Source: Blastocladiella emersonii ATCC 22665
Lineage: Eukaryota > Fungi > Blastocladiomycota
Direction of reading: 5' to 3'
Assembly (NCBI GenBank): GCA_025594325.1
Contig: JANHCV010000005.1
Coordinates: forward strand, 1,674,001-1,738,000
Length of the DNA stretch: 64,000 bases
A program made the position numbers and the translations under genes. The notes beneath the pieces are model-generated. The model saw nothing but the letters and a program-made list of their open reading frames with translations. It was not told the origin of the DNA and did not search any database. The first letter of the stretch is position 1. Each line of letters begins with the position of its first letter. This document shows positions 3,942 through 19,931 of the stretch, piece by piece.

Positions 3942-4142
3942 TGCGAGACGCGTTTTGCTCGCTCGCTCGCCCACTTCGCCCTCCGCCGGAACGCGTTCAA
4001 GTCTCCGAAACCAAGTCATCGCGCGTGCTCGAGACGATGCGGGTACGGGCGGCATGTGCGGGTCAAGGTTGCGGCCGAACGACCTGACGAACACGGCGCC
4101 CTCAAACGAGCCCGCCATGGACGAGCTGCACGCGCGCATGTG
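3942..4142 (+). repeat. degenerate, internally deleted direct copy of 6727-7535
   Basis: 3942-4017 aligns to 6727-6804. 4028-4142 aligns to about 7415-7535 in the RhoGEF 3' coding region (MRACSSSMAGSFEGAVFV vs MRARSSSMARSFEGAAFV). Confidence 0.8.
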
Positions 4143-4254
4143 TTTTATAAATGAATAGCATAAATCGATCAGACAAAAAACTTCAAAACATTAAGAGGAC
4201 GAATCGGGGTGACTCCACCGCCCGCACGAGCGACCTGCGCGACCGCGATCTCCT

Positions 4255-6437
4255 TCACTCCTCCGCGGGCATCGCCGAGGCGTCCTGCCCATGATGGTCG
4301 CCACCCTCGGATGGCAAAGCATCAGGATCCACGAACTTGACGACCTTGAACGCGTGCTCGGGGATCATGTCCCAGAAGGAGGCTGGAACGGACATGAAAA
4401 TGAAGCCGTTTCGGATGAGCGACCCGAAAGCAGCACGCGGATGAGCCGCAAAGAAAAGGCCAGTTGCCACGGCCGCGGTCGCGTACGGGTTGCAGCTGCA
4501 GGCCGGCTGAGCGCCAGGGCGAGCATCGCGCACACGACTACTGCACTCGGTGATCCGCTGCCACGTGGAAGCGATAAGCGAATATTTTGGCAATCTTGCG
4601 CACGTCGTAGGGGAAAGTGGAGGCGAGCGTCACCAGCGCGGCGCGCCACGGCTGCTGAACAGCAAGCGGGCACCTGTGACAAAGCGCGAGACCAGGGATC
4701 GGGGTCGCCGGCTGCAGGTGAGATTGGTTGAAAACAATGGAGAGCGGAGCGAAGGCTGAAATGAGCGTTTTCAGCACCGGTCCCGCGCACTCCGACTGCT
4801 GGATGATGTTGATTGCGGCGTCGCGGCACTCTGGACGAGCGAGGACGGCGACAAGCAGATTTGAGAGCTCGCGGTCGCGCGACGTGTACATGAAGAGGAC
4901 CATTTGACTGAGGTGCGGTGCGATCATCGTCAGCAGGTCGAGCGGGTTGACGACCATGTTGCCGCCGCGGAGTAGGCCCCAGGCAAGCTCAGCGACGCCT
5001 GCGCCGGTGAACGCATTGGCCACCTGTTCCAGGGTCGCGACGCCAGAGGACAGCGCAAACTGCATCACGGCTTGGGCTCCCATGTGCGAGGTGAAGGGGC
5101 AAAGCTCGACTCGAAAGGTTACGCACACGAGCGAGCGGTGAGATGGTTAGCCTTCTCGTGTCCAGGCGATTGCCCGCATGCGCGCAGTCACACGGTACCA
5201 TTCAACAGGGCCTCACGCCACGCGTCGTGGCCCGTGTACCGCGCCTTGAGCTCGTCAACAAACTCGAACTCGCCACGGCTTACGGCAAACGCAAGGATGC
5301 AGCCCATGAAGTGGGGGCCAAACGGCGCATAAGTCTCGATCCGCTTGATATCCGCGACACCCACGCGGCCTTCGTAGCACCAGTCCAAGAGCTGTTTGCC
5401 AAACCTTGCATTAAAGAGCACGGTATCCGAGTCAAGCGATAGGGCAGTCACGACCGGCTCAGGGAATCGCGCAAGGAGAGGAAAGAAACACTCGGGCCCA
5501 GCGGCGCTGAGGCCAAGCTTGAGGAACTCGTTGCGAAATCGGAACCGTGCACGAGAACCCAAGCTAAAAGCTCTGCAATATCTGAGGTGGGCTCGATGAC
5601 GCGTCGGTACGAGTCAAACAGGATCGAGTCGTTTGGATCCGCTCCGCCGAGCAGGCGGAAGACTACGTGCGTGTCGATTTGGCAGCGCGGGTCGGCGAGC
5701 AGCGGCCGGAAGAGTGATGGCATCCAGCGAGAGACTGACAGGGCGGTGAGCAAGTCGACGAGGCGAACGGCATCGATGTAAGGCAGGCATTGGTCGGAAA
5801 CGTTCTCGGGCCGCATGTCGTGCTCGCAGATGAACGGGACCCACTCGAAGGAAGTGAGCTGAATTTCGAGAAGGTTTGGAGTGTGAGTCAGGATATAGTC
5901 GAGCATGAAGCAGATGATATCAGGCCGCCCAACCGAGACGGAGAGGAGCAGAAAGCGCAGGAAGCCGGGCAGCGGGGCTCGGGACGCGACAGGCAAACCG
6001 AGCGGTGTATCGCTTGCAGAAGCCCCAATGCGGCGCCGGATTGCGCCCGCGTTCATGTCTGCAAAACGGAGCCGGCGGCCGAGGTGCACTGCGTACTCGA
6101 GTAGAAGCTCTGTCGGCAGCGGAGCGAGCCGAACACCGTCATAACCAGTGGGATTGACAAAAGGCGGAAGCAAAAGGCGCGTCGCGGTGTCAAACGACGA
6201 CTCGGGCGTTCTGTACGTGTTGCAGTAGGCGGGCAAGCGAGCGGCCCGTAGGATGTACAGGATCAACCAGTACCGCTTGACAGGGCGGTCGCGCATGCAA
6301 GTAGCGAGCGCAGCCGTCGAGGCGGCAAGCGCGGAGCGCGGTGCGCAAAGCTGGAGCACCAAGGACGTGAGGCCGTCGGGCAGATCTGCAAGCGTGTAGG
6401 CCGGCGGGTCGCCGGGAGGATACATGGTGCAATGCAT
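4255..6437 (-). pseudogene. F-box-like protein, subfamily A, copy A (frameshifted)
   Basis: N-terminus LADLPDGLTSLVLQLCAPR...KRYWL. Four ORF pieces (5448-6437, 5188-5562, 4538-5128, 4255-4593) are collinear with the paralogue at 19932-22230. Frame changes near 5540 and 4600; one intron at about 5190-5110 matches the paralogue's intron position. Confidence 0.7.
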
Positions 6438-13569: not shown

Positions 13570-14051
13570 GGCTGGTCGGAGAGTCGTCTAAGGGGGTCTA
13601 TCGAGGAGGGTGGCGGTCGCCGAGATGATGATGATGGCGCACGAGGAGAGGAGAGAGCGAGCGCAAGGGACGCTCACCGCAAAGGCTTGCGGCCGGCCGA
13701 AACCGCCACCGAGTCACCCGCTTGGGTCCACCTGCGCCACGCCACCGCAGTCATGACGCTGCGCCTCGCGGTGCTGTGGCGCAGCGCGTGCTGCATCGCG
13801 TATCCCTGAACGGGTCCATTGCTCCCAGTCGCGACATCGGCTCGCGCTTCATCCAATGCATCGAGTCGTCGTCCCTGCTCGCGACCTTAGCGACTTGGCG
13901 GGGGAGGTGGCGGTGTTGACCGCGGCGCCGGAGGCGCACGTGCGTCATCAGCGCGACGCGTCTCGCAGTGCGTCTCGCGTCTGCGCGCCGGCTCTTGCAA
14001 TGCTCACGCTCGACACCCACCATTGATGCAACTCTATGTAACTCTGTGCAA

Positions 14052-14712
14052 ATGAACAGCAAACCCGCCCCGCTGCTTCCGACGGGACCCCCCAAATCCG
14101 CGGCGACGGCGCCGCACGTCCCGCGCCTCTACTTCCCGCTCGCCGCCCTCGTCGGTGGCTTCTGCGTCATCGACCTCGCCCTCGTCAACTTTGGCGGCTA
14201 CATGCGCCACTCGCTCTACATCCTCGGCAGCGTCTTCGTCGTCCAGGTCCTGCTCGTGATTCTCGCGATTGCCCTGCTGCTGGTCCTCGTCGCGAGCACG
14301 CGCGCGTTTCGCGCCGGGCACATTCCGCTCATTGCGAACACGGTGCGCCGGCCGCTCCAGGCCGCCGCCGCGTACGCCGCCCTGCTCCTGGCTGCGCGCG
14401 GGTATCAGCTGGTGCGTCGTTTAGTCGCGGACGATGAGTCGGTGGGAACTCACGCAACGTCGCGCGTAGTCCGAGTATGCCAAGTGCTGGTACCAAGTGT
14501 GCCCGTCACCATCCGCCGCGAGCGCAACCATCTGGACATCGCCGTTCATCGCCGCCCAGGTCCTCATCAAGCTCGGTACGACCTGCATGCTCGAATGGGG
14601 ATGATTCGGACGACTAACGACTCGTCTCGGTGCAGGCTCGCTCGTCTACTACACGGCCGTCGGATGCACGCTCGCACGCATCCTCGCCATCCCCAACGTG
14701 CCCAACGCGTAG
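14052..14712 (+). CDS. TMEM138: TMEM138-like ciliary membrane protein
   Basis: Three exons with predicted introns at 14412-14469 and 14576-14635 (branch site CTAAC). Spliced product has VQVLLVILAIALLLVLVASTRAFRAGHIPLI...YAALLL...WTSPFIAAQVLIKLGSLVYY, matching the TMEM138 pattern (NTFVFQAGLVNLL...YFAL...WTDGLQMLFVFQRL..VLY) as I recall it. Confidence 0.65.
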
Positions 14713-15307
14713 CCCGATCCACCGCCTCACGGCAGCTCCGCAGAAGTCGGCGACGCTGCTCACCTCGACTCTCTCAACGTCGACCCGCTCAATCCCGAGC
14801 GCTATCCCCAACGACGATTGCCGCACCATCGACTCACGGGTCCTCGCGGACGCTGAGCCTGGCCACTGGCTCGCGCTACACTGGCCCTGGCTGCCCGGTC
14901 CCCACTGCTTCGCGGGCGATGCGATTGAGCATGGAAGGAGAAAAACCTTCAGCCCAAGCACTTTCGACGTTGTGAGATCCTGAATTGGTTGACGTGGTGG
15001 AATGATAATGATCGTGATTGAGTTGACGTGGTCCTCAGAGGAGCGTGGTGTCCACGGGGCCGACCATGGCCAAGCGGGTGCCGTTCAGGCTGTAGGCGCT
15101 CGTTTCTCGCTCTTGCTCCTTCTCCCTCGAGCTTCGACCCGCCTTGCTATGCGTTGCACCGTGTGTCCACTGGGCAACCCGCTGGTCCACACACTCGCAG
15201 AATCGCAGAATCGCAGAATCGCCCCACGAGCTTGCTCTCGTGGCGAATTAGTTGACCCTACCGCGTCTTGCCAACAGCAGTTGGGAGCGTTGGCAACGTA
15301 AGCAGCC

Positions 15308-15617
15308 TCAACCGGCTTGCAGCTGCAACCCGTACGCGACCGCGGCCACTGCGGCTGGCCTTTTCTTTGCGGCCCATCCGCGTGCCGCTTTCACGTCGCT
15401 CATCCAAAGCGACTTCATTTTCATGTCCGCTCCAGCCTCCTTCTGGGATATGATCCCCGAGCACGCTTTCAAGGTCGTCAAGTTCATCGAAGCTGATGCG
15501 CAATCCGAGGGTGGCGACCATCATGGGCAGGACGCCTCGGCGATGCCCGCGGAAGAGTGAAGGAGATCGCCGTCGCGCACGGGCGGTCGCGTCGCCCCGC
15601 TTTGTCCTATTGTTATA
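15308..15617 (+). pseudogene. 3' fragment of F-box-like subfamily A gene with 3' UTR
   Basis: Near-identical, inverted copy of 4190-4500 (PACSCNPYATAA...DHHGQDASAMPAEE*). Confidence 0.8.
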
Positions 15618-15620
15618 TTG

Positions 15621-15638
15621 AATCGAGGGCTAAAGCCC
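15621..15638 (+). repeat. left subterminal inverted repeat AATCGAGGGCTAAAGCCC
   Basis: Exact reverse complement of 19657-19674; contains the palindrome GAGGGCT-AA-AGCCCTC (15625-15640). Confidence 0.9.
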
Positions 15639-15744
15639 TCTTTCTAGACCGCATCGCGGCCGGATAGGCTGCCGACGCTCACGTGAGCATGTCGCCCTCT
15701 CGTCATGTGAATGTCCTCAAAACGCGTGACAGACGCGTCGTTTG

Positions 15745-16864
15745 TCATCTGACCGCTGTGGCGCAACGCGTCCTGGCTGCGCACGTGACGTGCTTCGGCC
15801 CAACCCGCGGATGCGTGGGGTTCGGCTGGTCGCGCAAGCGCGTTGCTCGACGCGCGGTGCGCTTTGCACCGACTTGCGCGGGAAGATCAGATCGTGGGAA
15901 AGCGAAAAGTCTATCTTTGAGCGAAAGGAAACAAGAGTCTGCTCGAGGGGAATGAACAAAGTCGGGGCGGGAGCGAGTGCAGCAGGTCGACGAGGACAGG
16001 CGGCCGCTGCGGCGCCGCTTGGGCTGCGCCTCGTGCTCGTCGTTGACGACGCACTCCTCGTGCTCCTCCTCGGCGGCCGCGGCGGCGGTCGCCGCCGTGC
16101 GCTTCGTCGCGTTGGCGGTAGACGTCGGGACACCGGCTTGGTCGTCACCGATGGCGGCGGGCGTGCACGCCGCGAGCGCAGCGGTTGTCGGAGCCGCAGC
16201 TGCGGCCGCGTCGTCCATGTCGCACCCGACCGACACGGAGTTTGAGTCCGGCACCCCCACGACGATCTTGTCGATGCTGCCGATCGCGATGAACGAGTGC
16301 GTCCAAATGGGGTCCGCGCAGCTCGGGAAGCCGCCGTACTTCTTGGTGCCGGTGTTCTTGCCGCCGGCGTTCTTGGTGTTGGCGGGCGAGTTGATGGCGG
16401 GCGGCACGACAGCGGGCGGCTGGATCGCGTGCTCCTGCGTCACGGGCGCCGCGGCGGGCGAGACGACGGCGGCCGAGATGTTGACGGGCTGCTGGATCGT
16501 GAGCTGCTGCGCCGCGGGTTCCGCGGCAATCGAGGCGGCGACCTGCTGCACACCGTGACCAGCGGCGCCCGATGCGACGCCGTTTGCCGCGGCGCGGGCG
16601 GCCTGGTGCGCGGCGAGGTTGTTGACAAAGTTCTCGCGGCCGTCGCGCATGCACTCGTGGTACACCTCCGTGGCCTCGTTGAGCTCGGCCCGCATGCCCT
16701 TCATCGTGCGCGGCACGCCTGCCGAGGTGAAGGCCTCGTCGCCGGGGAAGCCCGGGTCGTCGTCGGATTCTGAAGAGTCCGACGCGTTCACGTCGCAGAG
16801 GAACCGCGGCTGCGGCGGTGCCGTCAGCGTCGCGCGAGCCGGAGCCGTGCTTGGCGACGTCGGT
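15745..16864 (-). CDS. cargo ORF inside the Helentron-like element, probably 5'-truncated
   Basis: Open frame with strong coding bias (EATEVYHECMRDGRENFVNNLAAHQ; EEEHEECVVNDEHEAQPKRRR). No in-frame ATG at its start. Confidence 0.55.
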
Positions 16865-16869
16865 CAGTC

Positions 16870-19529
16870 GGAGAACGACATTGTTCTCGACCCGACTATC
16901 GTCAACTCGGACGTGGAGGGCATCCTGGCCGACAACGGCGAAACCGAGGCGAACCTCGAGCGCATCAAGAGCGTGACCTCTACGCTGATCCCTGGAATGG
17001 GCCACGGCATGATGGGCACCCTGCTCTTCCCCGACGTGCAGCCGTTCGATGTCAACGCCGCGCCGCCGCCGCCGTACCTCGAGACGCCCATCTCGCCGAC
17101 TGACGTCAAGAAAATCATGGCTCAACTATGCGCTGCCGCGGCTCAAGGTCATCCGACCGCGGATGTCGGCGCCGTACCTGTCGTTCCCGGGCCCAGGCAG
17201 CCGCCCATGATCGGTATTGTTCCCGCAGTGCCATCTGGAGCCTTGAAAAACACATCTCAGCATGGTATCGACCCGGAAATGGCCGCCGACGTGCCCGAAC
17301 CAGAACTCGGACCACCCGTCGACGTTTGGCGCAGCGCCTTCACAACCACGCCAACGGATCCTGACGCGCGCGCGCGGTTCCTCATCACCAAGGCCGCGCA
17401 CTCGATCAGCAACTTTGCCTACGACACACGCGGCGACGAGTGGAGCGACGGAAAGCAGCGCACTGTGCACACGCCCGCGTACGCGAGCCTCGCGCAGGTC
17501 TCGCTCAAGTTCAACCTCAACGAAGAGCAGCACCGCGCGTTCGTGCTCTTTCTCATGCCGCTCATCGACACCTTCATCGGCGGCAACGCGGGTATCGCTC
17601 GGCCGAGCAGAACGTGATCCTGTTGGGCCGCGACAACGTCCAACATGTCGTCGGCACCGCGGCCCTCCCGCCCATGAGCAAGGACCGGACGCCGATCATC
17701 CTCACCGGCTTGGGCGGCACGGGCAAGTCGCGCGTCGTCGATGCAATCCGATACTTTCTCGCGTCCTGGAACCGGGAAAGTGCCTCATGGTCATGGCCAT
17801 GACCGGGATTGCGGCCGCCGACATTGGCGGTACGACCATCCACGCCGCGTTCTCTTTCTCGCTAAGGCCGAAAGAAAACAGCCCGGACGTGGCCCGTTTG
17901 CGTACCGATCCTGCGGTTGCCATCGCGTGGAAAGGGCGTCTCGGCGTCGTCATCGACGAGTTCTCCATGTGCGACGCGACTTTACTCGGCCGTATCGACG
18001 CGAACCTGCGCCTCCTGCGGCGGTGCGACGAACCATTCGGCGGGTGCATCGTCATGCTCGCTGGCGATCATTTACAGCTGCCTCCCGTCAACGGAACTGC
18101 CCTGTACAAGGTGCCCGCCGTGCTCAACGACGCGCCGGACTCGTTCTACCTGCGCATGACGTCAAATCAATTGACGGTCCCCGAGCACGTGGATCGAGGC
18201 CAGGTCGCGTACTGGCGCACTACACGCGCTGTTCGTCTCGTGAAGAGCAACCGATTTGTCGACGATCCACCATGGGGCAACGAAATGGACGCGCTCCGCC
18301 TCGTCGAGGCGTCGGACACGCTGTCCGACCTGATCAACTCGCGTACGACCACTCAGCTTCAGCAGTACGTCGACGAAAACGGCAACAACGTCCACAAGGA
18401 GATCCTCAAGAAGCCCGGACTCACGGTTATCGCGCCCGACAACCACACGCGCCACGCCTTCAACCTGCTCTACACGCGGCTCGCAGCAGCAAACCCGAAC
18501 CGCATCGTGTTCCAGACCAAGGGCAACATCACGCGCCCGCGTGATAGGCGCCGCACGCGTGAACGCGTCGCCATCTGCGACAAGGACGTGTTTCGCCTCG
18601 GAGGAGAGCCAGAAACCACGACTGAACTGCCGGCCATCCTCAAGCTCTTCGTCGGAATGGAGATGCGCGTCAAGACCAACCAGTGCGTAGCAAAGGGGTG
18701 CGCGAACGGTGCGGTTGGCGTCGTGCACCACATCGACTGGAAGCCCGAGACCACGTTTACGCGAACCGCGTCCAACATGTACCGGCCATCCTGCGCTCCA
18801 CTCAACGTGTGGATCGACCTGCCCGACGCTCCTTGTGGCCCTCGCTTCCCGGGCATGCCGGCCGCGTGGCCTGACACGGTCATCCCGCTTGCCGTGGAGA
18901 AGAAGGACCTCCTGTACATGGCGGGCGGTTCCCCGTCGCGAGAGCGGGTCGTCAGCACAACGGGGGATTCGCTCCCACTCTGTGTCAACAACACCAAGAC
19001 CAACAGGAGCAAGTATCCTAATCATGCCGTCGCGCACATCGAGCAGTACCCGATGGTGCCAGCCTTCGCCATGATGGTCCACGGGGTTCAAGGCGTGACC
19101 AAGAACGCCATCGCCCTGGCAGCTCCGCGTCCCGCGGGCATGGAGCGTCTCATCAGCGGCGCTTCCCTGTACGTGGCGTTATCGCGGCTTTGTCGCTCAA
19201 AGTACCTGTGGGTGCTTCAGCCGATCCCGAGAGCCGTGCTCAAGTCCATGAAGCCGGATCCACTCGCAGTGGCCGAGGACAACCGGCTCCAGATGCTCGA
19301 CGAGCTGACCAAGACCGCTTTCGATCAAGGTACAGCCATCGCGCCAGGCGACCCGCGCATCGCTAAACTCTTTGACGACGCGACTCTCTTCTCGCGCCAG
19401 CACGCGGCTGAGAAGATAGTCGCCAAGCGCGCGTCAGATGCTCTCAACGCAAGGTTTCGGCGATTGGCCAACAAACGTGCTGGAGGCGAGGACGGCTCAC
19501 AGAACGCCAAGAAACAGAAAACACAGTAG
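16870..19529 (+). pseudogene. PIF1-family (Helitron-type) helicase with two frameshifts
   Basis: LNEEQHRAF, Walker A GLGGTGKS, AMTGIAAADIGGTTIH, VIDEFSM, GDHLQLPPV, QYPMVPAFAM, YVALSRL. Frame changes near 17600 and 17775. Confidence 0.88.
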
Positions 19530-19656
19530 AGAATTAACCTAGTGTATTCCATCATCCAATCCATCAATAGCACGATTTCCATAGCTCGATCACCTAAATC
19601 TCCTGTGCGGGACGCACGCGACAGCACCTCCACCACTCGTGCACCATACGTGGCGG

Positions 19657-19700
19657 GGGCTTTAGCCCTCGATTGAAAACCAAACGCGAAGCGTTTAGGT
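19657..19700 (+). repeat. right subterminal inverted repeat plus 3' stem-loop
   Basis: GGGCTTTAGCCCTCGATT (19657-19674), then AAACGC-GAA-GCGTTT (19682-19696). Confidence 0.88.
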
Positions 19701-19931
19701 GCCCCAAGTATAATTTTTTGTTTGGTTGATTACATGTTCTTCCTTGACCAAACACAAATCCCTGCGATGCCGCGAGAGTATCGCGGCGAGCGTGTCAGGT
19801 GTGGCGCAACGCGGTCACATGAGGCGATCAGGTGCGCTGTTCCCACGCTTGCGCGCGACCGCGGCGCGACTGCTGCTCGTCGCGCCAACTCTTCCCTCGC
19901 GCCCCCACTCTATTCAATAGCCTAATTAGCG

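Follow-up and report, generated by a model that had tools for sequence, protein, structure and literature searches.

We found that the segment at 15623 to 19713 of the window (the whole 64,000-nucleotide stretch of DNA analysed) is very probably an inactive copy, no longer autonomous, of a rolling-circle transposon family of the Helitron2 type (HLE2) in Blastocladiella emersonii. HLE2, the group comprising Helitron2 and Helentron in the HELIANO study, is defined by short TIRs of 12–16 nt, a stem-loop after the right repeat, and T-T insertion, with DUF6570 upstream of Rep as a marker (PMC11417382). The assignment to this group, a probable one drawn from sequence, relies on the marker DUF6570, present in the closest RepHel relatives, and on the layout of the ends. 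As in other HLE2 elements (PMC11417382), T residues flank nearly all copies if the 5′ T is counted as host DNA, and the short repeat is followed by a stem-loop on the right: the repeat spans 16 nt, its 3′ arm lies 41 nt from the tip, and a hairpin then follows at 19680–19699.

Ends of the element

The bounds were taken from 20 copies aligned with their flanks, whose ends were sharp and identical, and genome-wide matches to either end broke off at 15623 and 19713. The window copy is on the plus strand, is 4091 bp long and internally deleted, starts with TCGAGGGC at 15623 (15624 if the T belongs to the host) and finishes with GTATAA at 19713. Its inverted-repeat arms run from 15618 to 15638 and from 19657 to 19677 (21 nt, 95% complementary), with an exact 18-bp core (15621–15638 and 19657–19674); the chance expectation of such an exact 18-mer in 4.8 kb is, by our own estimate, about 2e-4. 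A sequence-only reading of this DNA had described the 18-bp repeat at the termini. The repeat is present, but only 16 nt of it (15623–15638 and 19657–19672) are family-wide. In the window repeat, the first two A's and the additional TTGAA belong to the flanks outside the element; their match reflects a target that is usually A-R-T. Since the family repeat covers only these 16 nt and the rest is flank, the start proposed in that reading (15618) lay 5–6 nt too far to the left; its end (19713) agreed with the 20 aligned copies.

The 5′ arm is located at the 5′ tip and the 3′ arm inside the 3′ tip, and both arms form hairpins. The 5′ terminal palindrome, TCGAGGGC-TAAA-GCCCTC (15623–15640, plus strand), includes the 5′ arm. 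On the other side, a plus-strand subterminal feature at 19655–19672 consists of a palindrome (19655–19670) holding the 3′ arm. The 3′ stem-loop CCAAACGCGAAGCGTTTAGG (19680–19699, plus strand) carries a GCGAAGC mini-hairpin, a structure described as stable (PMC13037366), at 19686–19692 and ends 14 nt from the tip. The remaining tail, TGCCCCAAGTATAA (19700–19713, plus strand), represents the 3′ terminus according to the copy alignment and the right flanks. The 5′ palindrome (15625–15640), the 3′ palindrome and the 3′ stem-loop were each predicted to fold as single-stranded DNA with a z of about −2.8. GCGAAGC was unchanged in 18 of 18 distinct 3′ ends, and one stem pair of the stem-loop had changed from A-T to G-C with a G-T intermediate, a compensatory substitution. 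The proposed GCGAAGC stem-loop 3′ of the right repeat arm was thereby borne out, both in its fold and in its invariant loop.

Insertion sites

All 34 distinct left junctions had T at −1, and R was found at −2 in 33 of them (A in 21, G in 12) and A at −3 in 23. On the right, T occupied +1 in 29 of 30 copies and later positions varied. The T run at 19714–19719 (plus strand), which had been read as part of the element, is host DNA; only its first T recurs beside other copies. Flank comparison in 20 complete copies revealed no target-site duplication of at least 2 bp. As an approximate empty-site control, we used a paralogous unoccupied site at 4139–4511 on the minus strand, a diverged paralogue rather than an allele, with which the joined flanks aligned at 84% identity over 374 nt. 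The alignment extended 43 nt beyond the junction and was collinear across it, with no duplication and a junction difference of at most 1 nt, and the unoccupied site read G-T at the insertion point. These results uphold the earlier claims of an internal empty site and of insertion without duplication.

T stands on both sides of nearly all copies, and the 5′ T is equally readable as the first base of the element. The first T of the 5′ palindrome (15623) may be host DNA. Alternatively, this invariant T may be part of the element, which would then have TC as its first two bases and insert 3′ of A or G, closer to canonical Helitrons. The latter possibility bears on a different classification, in which the element is a variant of canonical Helitron1 (HLE1) with a TC start, A or G before it and T after it, and the inverted repeat is a lineage-specific addition. 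The readable TC, the preceding A (21/34) or G (12/34), and the following T all fit such a variant, as does the 3′ hairpin 14 nt from the tip, which is near the canonical 10–12 nt (PMC5148889). However, the 3′ end is GTATAA rather than CTRR, the 16-nt inverted repeat is asymmetric with palindromic arms, resembling that of Helitron2 and FoHeli1/2, the HLE2 marker DUF6570 occurs in the nearest RepHel relatives, and the helicase is weakly similar to that of Helraiser; we therefore consider an HLE1 variant highly unlikely. The canonical Helitron1 combination of 5′ TC, 3′ CTRR, a hairpin 10–12 nt from the end and A|T insertion was not found in this element. The sequence-only reading had contrasted the element with TC...CTRR Helitrons, which holds for its 3′ end, but the element may literally begin with TC. 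With Helitron1, the family shares an HUH Rep with two tyrosines and a PIF1-like helicase (as in Helraiser, PDB 7LCC), insertion free of target-site duplication, a hairpin near the 3′ tip and possibly the 5′ TC; unlike Helitron1, it has no CTRR end and possesses an asymmetric inverted repeat.

The end layout nearly matches that of FoHeli1 and FoHeli2, Helitron2-type elements of Fusarium oxysporum (Chellapan et al. 2016, PMC5148889). In both systems, the 5′ tip is a hairpin starting with T-C, the 5′ bases recur inverted, again as a hairpin, inside the 3′ tip (38–51 nt in FoHeli1/2, 41 nt here), and the 3′ tip is A/T-rich. Both also insert after ...A-T without target-site duplication, leave the first T ambiguous between host and element, have copies inserted a few bases apart, and are 4–6 kb long (PMC5148889). 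The terminal sequences differ (GTATAA here versus ATATTTT in FoHeli1/2; PMC5148889). In addition, unlike FoHeli1/2, the present family has an additional hairpin with a GCGAAGC cap downstream of the 3′ repeat, before the tip, its host is a blastocladiomycete of about 60% G+C, and the copies examined here are without Rep and carry an antisense ORF.

Copy number and derivatives

The 3′ subterminal 18-mer was found 73 times exactly and 113 times with at most one mismatch in the 32.65-Mb genome, with no occurrence of the reversed control, and each element end had at least 40 matches. We estimate the family at about 75–110 copies, which are approximately 95–98% alike. In derivatives of 1.8–2.0 kb, the shared sequence is confined to 193 nt at the 5′ end and 66 nt at the 3′, and short deletion derivatives without any helicase are present. 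The expectation that the termini would be multi-copy and accompanied by small derivatives was thus confirmed. The genome also contains a sister family of about 5 kb with 1139-codon frames (contig 17 near 322–327 kb and contig 19 near 666–671 kb), which has the first 19 nt and the 3′ repeat in common with the present family.

Internal anatomy of the window copy

Comparison of the window element with the sister copies L048, L053 and L041 by blastn and with the ORFs of L072 revealed a deletion junction at 16860–16863 (plus strand). About 1.28 kb of L048, containing the Rep tyrosine motif and linker, is absent at this point, and a further HUH segment of L072 is likewise missing. Downstream, tblastn of family ORFs against the window placed a linker upstream of the helicase in frame 2 (16862–17599) and the helicase P-loop segment in frame 1 (17599–17778), with a frameshift at both ends of the latter; a 1-nt deletion relative to L041 lies near 17770. 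The remainder of the PIF1-like SF1B helicase follows in frame 3 and extends to the stop codon (17778–19529; Pfam PIF1, E=2.1e-18), with 88% identity to the L053 ORF. All three segments are on the plus strand. The window copy retains only this frameshifted helicase, and it is unable to move on its own because Rep is deleted and the helicase is interrupted by two frameshifts.

On the minus strand, an antisense ORF of 348 aa (15745–16791) is of low complexity, has no Pfam match and is kept open in several copies. Its dN/dS was about 0.3–0.7 in frame, below that of shifted frames, a figure that few differences underlie. The element is located some 100 bp upstream of a minus-strand gene, measured from the start codon.

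Rep remnants in sister copies

In sister copies, HUH and tyrosine motifs are found upstream of the same helicase, and all these remnants are broken. An HUH ORF in L072 matched Helitron_like_N (E=1.4e-5), the match ending at the H-x-H motif. An N.D...Y..KY.TK motif in L053 and L072 aligned with near-invariant columns of RepHel relatives, and in L071 a Helitron_like_N piece is joined to the same type of 3′ end. The components pointing to a RepHel origin (HUH, two tyrosines and an SF1B PIF1-like helicase) were therefore found at the family level only. Stop codons or short open frames were present in eight of eight related HUH loci. DUF6570 occurs 15 times in the genome, with open frames that bear it on contig 21 near 865 kb and contig 19 near 541 kb, and the N-terminal Rep part (DUF6570 plus Helitron_like_N positions 1–135) was not seen joined to this subfamily. 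The sequence-only reading had proposed looking for autonomous Rep-Hel copies; Rep is missing from the window copy, and the assembly yielded no intact RepHel bounded by these termini.

The nearest relatives outside the genome are RepHel proteins that combine DUF6570, Helitron_like_N and PIF1 domains, and a word-index protein search with a 987-aa sister ORF returned only two matches, both from the same organism. No endonuclease domain was detected in the window ORFs, the longer sister ORFs scanned or the five nearest outside relatives. This result bears on whether the family is a strict Helentron, that is, an HLE2 element whose autonomous form has an apurinic/apyrimidinic endonuclease domain. 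The end layout is common to Helentron and Helitron2 and so agrees with either; the absence of the domain from all these ORFs and relatives leaves a strict Helentron with very little probability. The family yielded no intact autonomous copy. From the joint Helentron/Helitron2 class proposed earlier, we retain the Helitron2 end layout and drop the strict Helentron.

Relationships of the helicase

A quick LG+G4 tree search, on a sample without named HLE1, Helitron2 or Helentron references, placed the window helicase inside a 52-row clade (SH-aLRT 97) that holds each of the 17 Rep-bearing rows and is separate from a 30-row clade of PIF1-only proteins, one sampled member of which is named PIF1. The helicase did not group with cellular PIF1, the outcome that had been named beforehand as adverse to a Helitron origin; it instead lay among Rep-linked helicases. 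In comparisons with solved structures, it scored nearer to cellular PIF1 than to Helraiser (Helraiser E=6.6e-8). This score is weak counter-evidence, because a profile of bona fide RepHel relatives was likewise nearer to cellular PIF1 than to Helraiser. An annotated Rep-bearing protein gave no phmmer match to the Helraiser Rep among solved structures, and a profile of 12 RepHel relatives plus the L053 and L072 ORFs matched Helraiser in the helicase only; the catalytic residues are therefore not mappable onto a solved structure.

These comparisons also bear on a non-Helitron origin, in which the segment would stem from duplication of a cellular PIF1 gene or from a mobile element of another type (cut-and-paste or virus-derived), the inverted repeat having arisen by chance. 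The window copy does show a PIF1 domain only, and its best solved-structure matches are cellular PIF1. Conversely, the roughly 75–110 copies have exact shared ends and include derivatives without helicase, target-site duplications are lacking, in sister copies this helicase is preceded by HUH and tyrosine motifs, and the tree puts it among Rep-linked helicases, so that we regard an origin outside the Helitrons as scarcely credible. Specifically, we rejected a cellular PIF1 paralogue on the copy number, the exact ends and the Rep remnants, and a cut-and-paste transposon on the missing target-site duplication and the asymmetric repeat.

Proposed mobilisation of the family

Following the known Helitron pathway, a RepHel acting in trans would nick the plus strand at the 5′ tip, beside the terminal palindrome, and its 5′-to-3′ helicase would then peel the strand off. 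The 3′ subterminal palindrome, an inverted copy of the 5′ tip, and the GCGAAGC hairpin would mark the stop point, and a second cut would fall 14 nt past that hairpin, after GTATAA. The freed strand would be circularised and inserted at an A-R-T|T site without target-site duplication. In this scheme, we infer by analogy where the strand is cut, what the hairpins do, the formation of a circle and the source of the RepHel. Head-to-tail junctions of the form GTATAA-T-CGAGGG are present in the genome (L049 and L015); for these, insertion beside a resident copy is as good an explanation as a circular intermediate.

It is conceivable, though rather unlikely, that a Rep-less lineage consisting of the helicase and a conserved antisense gene itself spread to about 75–110 copies in a genome whose assembly holds no intact cognate RepHel. 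If Rep-less copies are still mobile, a RepHel of another family with other termini might serve them, for example, the intact 1481-codon RepHel frame on contig 2 near 728 kb. Alternatively, the retained helicase and the antisense product might help to recruit a foreign Rep. Either route, if true, would divide the labour in a way unusual for Helitrons.

The element adds to the known Helitron2 kind and by itself opens no new question; the analysis defines the exact ends, target preference and internal structure of a Helitron2-type family from an early-diverging fungus. No account of Helitrons from Blastocladiella came up in our literature searches, and the findings lend support to published work in which the non-canonical type makes up most fungal Helitrons. 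For annotation, the helicase ORF in the window should not be called a cellular PIF1 gene but treated as a transposon remnant. A piece of the element family has been absorbed into at least one public gene model, which is named rad14.

Boundaries and copy number of the element

The window element (15623–19713, plus strand) is a real, well-bounded, non-autonomous Helitron2-type copy, ordinary in kind. The window belongs to contig 17 (1674001–1738000) of a 32.65-Mb assembly with 21 contigs and about 60% G+C, and the boundaries of the element were set by aligning 20 family copies including their flanks. Likeness among these copies began at TCGAGGGC (window 15623) and ceased at ...CAAGTATAA (window 19713); thus, of the limits proposed from the sequence alone, 15618–19713, the right end was correct and the start lay 5–6 nt too far left. 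The exact 18-bp inverted repeat noted in that reading was present as the core of 21-nt arms that are 95% complementary (15618–15638 and 19657–19677), and its family-wide part was only 16 nt. The additional repeat-matching bases of the window copy are flank, matching because the target is usually A-R-T. The termini were multi-copy: a genome search gave at least 40 scored matches for each end, and the 3′ subterminal 18-mer had 73 exact occurrences in the whole genome, or 113 when up to one mismatch was allowed (reversed control, 0).

Target site and empty site

At 34 distinct 5′ junctions, the base directly before CGAGGG was always T, the second base upstream was A in 21, G in 12 and T in one, and the third was A in 23. 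Directly after GTATAA, T was found in 29 of 30 cases. Since the positions past this first T varied among copies, the T run at 19714–19719, which the sequence-only reading had listed after the stem-loop, is host DNA. No flank repeat of 2 bp or more was detected in the 20 complete copies, consistent with the proposed insertion without a target-site duplication. The proposed empty-site control also held, as the joined flanks aligned with the paralogous site at 4139–4511 (minus strand) with 84% identity over 374 nt, extending 43 nt beyond the junction, where the two differed by a single base. With the 5′ T counted as host DNA, the occupied and paralogous sites would be collinear with a G/T substitution; counted as an element base, it would leave a 1-nt gap. 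The same doubt, whether the first T is host or element, was raised by Chellapan et al. for FoHeli1/2, Helitron2-type elements of Fusarium oxysporum (PMC5148889). The two sites are the upstream regions of a paralogous gene pair (15258–15524, minus strand, occupied; 4290 onward, plus strand, empty), and the insertion is upstream of the minus-strand gene copy at 15524, about 100 bp from its start codon.

Terminal hairpins

The palindromic ends and GCGAAGC hairpin recognized by the sequence-only reading were borne out: the 5′ tip hairpin (15625–15640), the 3′ subterminal palindrome (19655–19670) and the 3′ stem-loop with GCGAAGC (19680–19699) all fold as single-stranded DNA with z of about −2.8. 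GCGNAGC mini-hairpins are on record as exceptionally stable (PMC13037366). Among 18 distinct 3′ ends, GCGAAGC was unchanged in all, and four of the sequences carry a compensatory A-T to G-C change at one of its stem pairs, of which a fifth shows the G-T intermediate; together these observations lend modest support to selection on the hairpin. FoHeli1/2 have a nearly equal layout, with a hairpin tip whose bases recur inverted, again as a hairpin, 38–51 nt from the 3′ end, and share with the window family insertion after ...A-T and copies landing side by side (PMC5148889).

Coding content

The only domain identified in the window copy was a PIF1-like helicase (Pfam PIF1, E=2.1e-18), spread over three frames, the frame changing near 17599 and 17778, and about 1.28 kb present in sister copies was missing at about 16862. 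Two sister copies, L053 and L048, start with a motif, N-x-D ... Y-x-x-K-Y-x-T-K, that matches near-invariant columns in an alignment of RepHel (HUH nuclease plus helicase) relatives. A third, L072, has a Cys-rich CRYG-LP segment and an extra ORF that closes with an H-x-H motif and whose match to Helitron_like_N (E=1.4e-5) spans the final 56 positions of that domain, and at another locus (L071) Helitron_like_N pieces were linked to a 3′ end of the window type. The autonomous copies with these termini that the sequence-only reading had called for were not recovered: no intact cognate RepHel was found; all eight related HUH loci contained stop codons or lay in short open frames.

A 1481-codon open frame with a full Helitron_like_N match (E of about 1e-23) was found at L061 (contig 2, 726886–730536); no termini of the window family lie near it, and it may be an intact RepHel belonging to a different Helitron family. 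An 8.7-kb family copy (L047; contig 15, 2369900–2379200, minus strand) carries two additional internal blocks of about 2.4 kb compared with the window copy. P0002, a public contig 18 gene model of 1100 aa that bears the name "DNA repair protein rad14", includes a stretch 93–95% identical to the family helicase C-terminus, and this model probably merges a gene with a piece of transposon.

The 5′ 1.2 kb of the element contains an antisense low-complexity ORF (15745–16791, minus strand) without a Pfam match, which terminates in an acidic stretch and then a basic PKRRR-type tail. Several copies keep it open, and its in-frame dN/dS of about 0.3–0.7, values based on few differences, is below that of shifted frames, which is weak evidence that it is under coding constraint.

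Classification

Exhaustive HMMER searching yielded 4556 relatives, and the best matches outside the host genus were long proteins whose similarity extended over the helicase as well as the C-terminal region of Rep. A Pfam scan of the five best outside relatives revealed Helitron_like_N and PIF1 in four, one of the four showing only a weak terminal fragment and two of the four also having DUF6570; the fifth had PIF1 and Peptidase_C48 without Helitron_like_N. Local phmmer labelling placed DUF6570, an HLE2 (Helitron2 plus Helentron) marker according to the HELIANO authors (PMC11417382), in most Rep-bearing matches. Grouping with cellular PIF1, the outcome that would have spoken against the sequence-only reading, was not observed: in a 91-row helicase tree built without named HLE1 (Helitron1) and HLE2 references, the window helicase fell inside a 52-row clade (SH-aLRT 97) holding all 17 Rep-bearing rows, distinct from the 30-row PIF1-only clade, in which the one named member among those sampled is called PIF1. 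Its nearest named relative was a Blastocladiella britannica protein. Cellular PIF1 structures gave the window helicase higher scores than Helraiser did; the ranking was the same for a profile built from bona fide RepHel relatives and is therefore no argument against Helitron membership. Since no scanned ORF contained an endonuclease domain, a Helentron in the strict sense is not supported, and neither is a canonical Helitron1, because the 3′ terminus is not CTRR.

Mobilization and neighboring copies

In the established Helitron pathway, from which we infer the steps linking the observed ends, flanks, hairpins and Rep remnants, a RepHel acting in trans would nick at the 5′ tip, its helicase would unwind 5′ to 3′, termination would occur past the two 3′ hairpins, and the freed strand would be circularized and integrated at A-R-T|T. 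Head-to-tail joints between copies were found at four loci (L049, minus-strand 4505/4506; L015, 1502/1503; L040, 1670; L017, minus-strand 1499). Two were exact, GTATAA-T-CGAGGG or TGAGGG; in the other two, the upstream copy ended at CAAGT, 4 bases short, which would accord with the A-G-T target preference. The GTATAA-T-CGAGGG joints are compatible with read-through or a circle-like joint and equally with insertion next to a resident copy, because the resident 3′ end and its flanking T remake the preferred A-A-T target.

Sister-family copies were located 7 and 35 bp downstream of window-family copies. This sister family (L050, minus-strand 4510; L054, 4283; L022, minus-strand 1709) has the first 19 nt of the 5′ tip in common with the window family before diverging from it, uses the same 3′ repeat, and is about 5 kb long, its open frames reaching 1139 codons. 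Two contig 20 copies about 7 kb apart in opposite orientation, L044 (631600–636400, plus strand) and L055 (620100–624900, minus strand), have 3′ flanks identical over at least 45 nt and different 5′ flanks, which looks like an inverted duplication with its inner edge at the 5′ tip of the element or close to it. Elsewhere in the window, an ORF at 13968–14975 (plus strand) matched TMEM138, a ciliary transition-zone protein, barely above the Pfam cut-off, which fits a zoospore-forming fungus.
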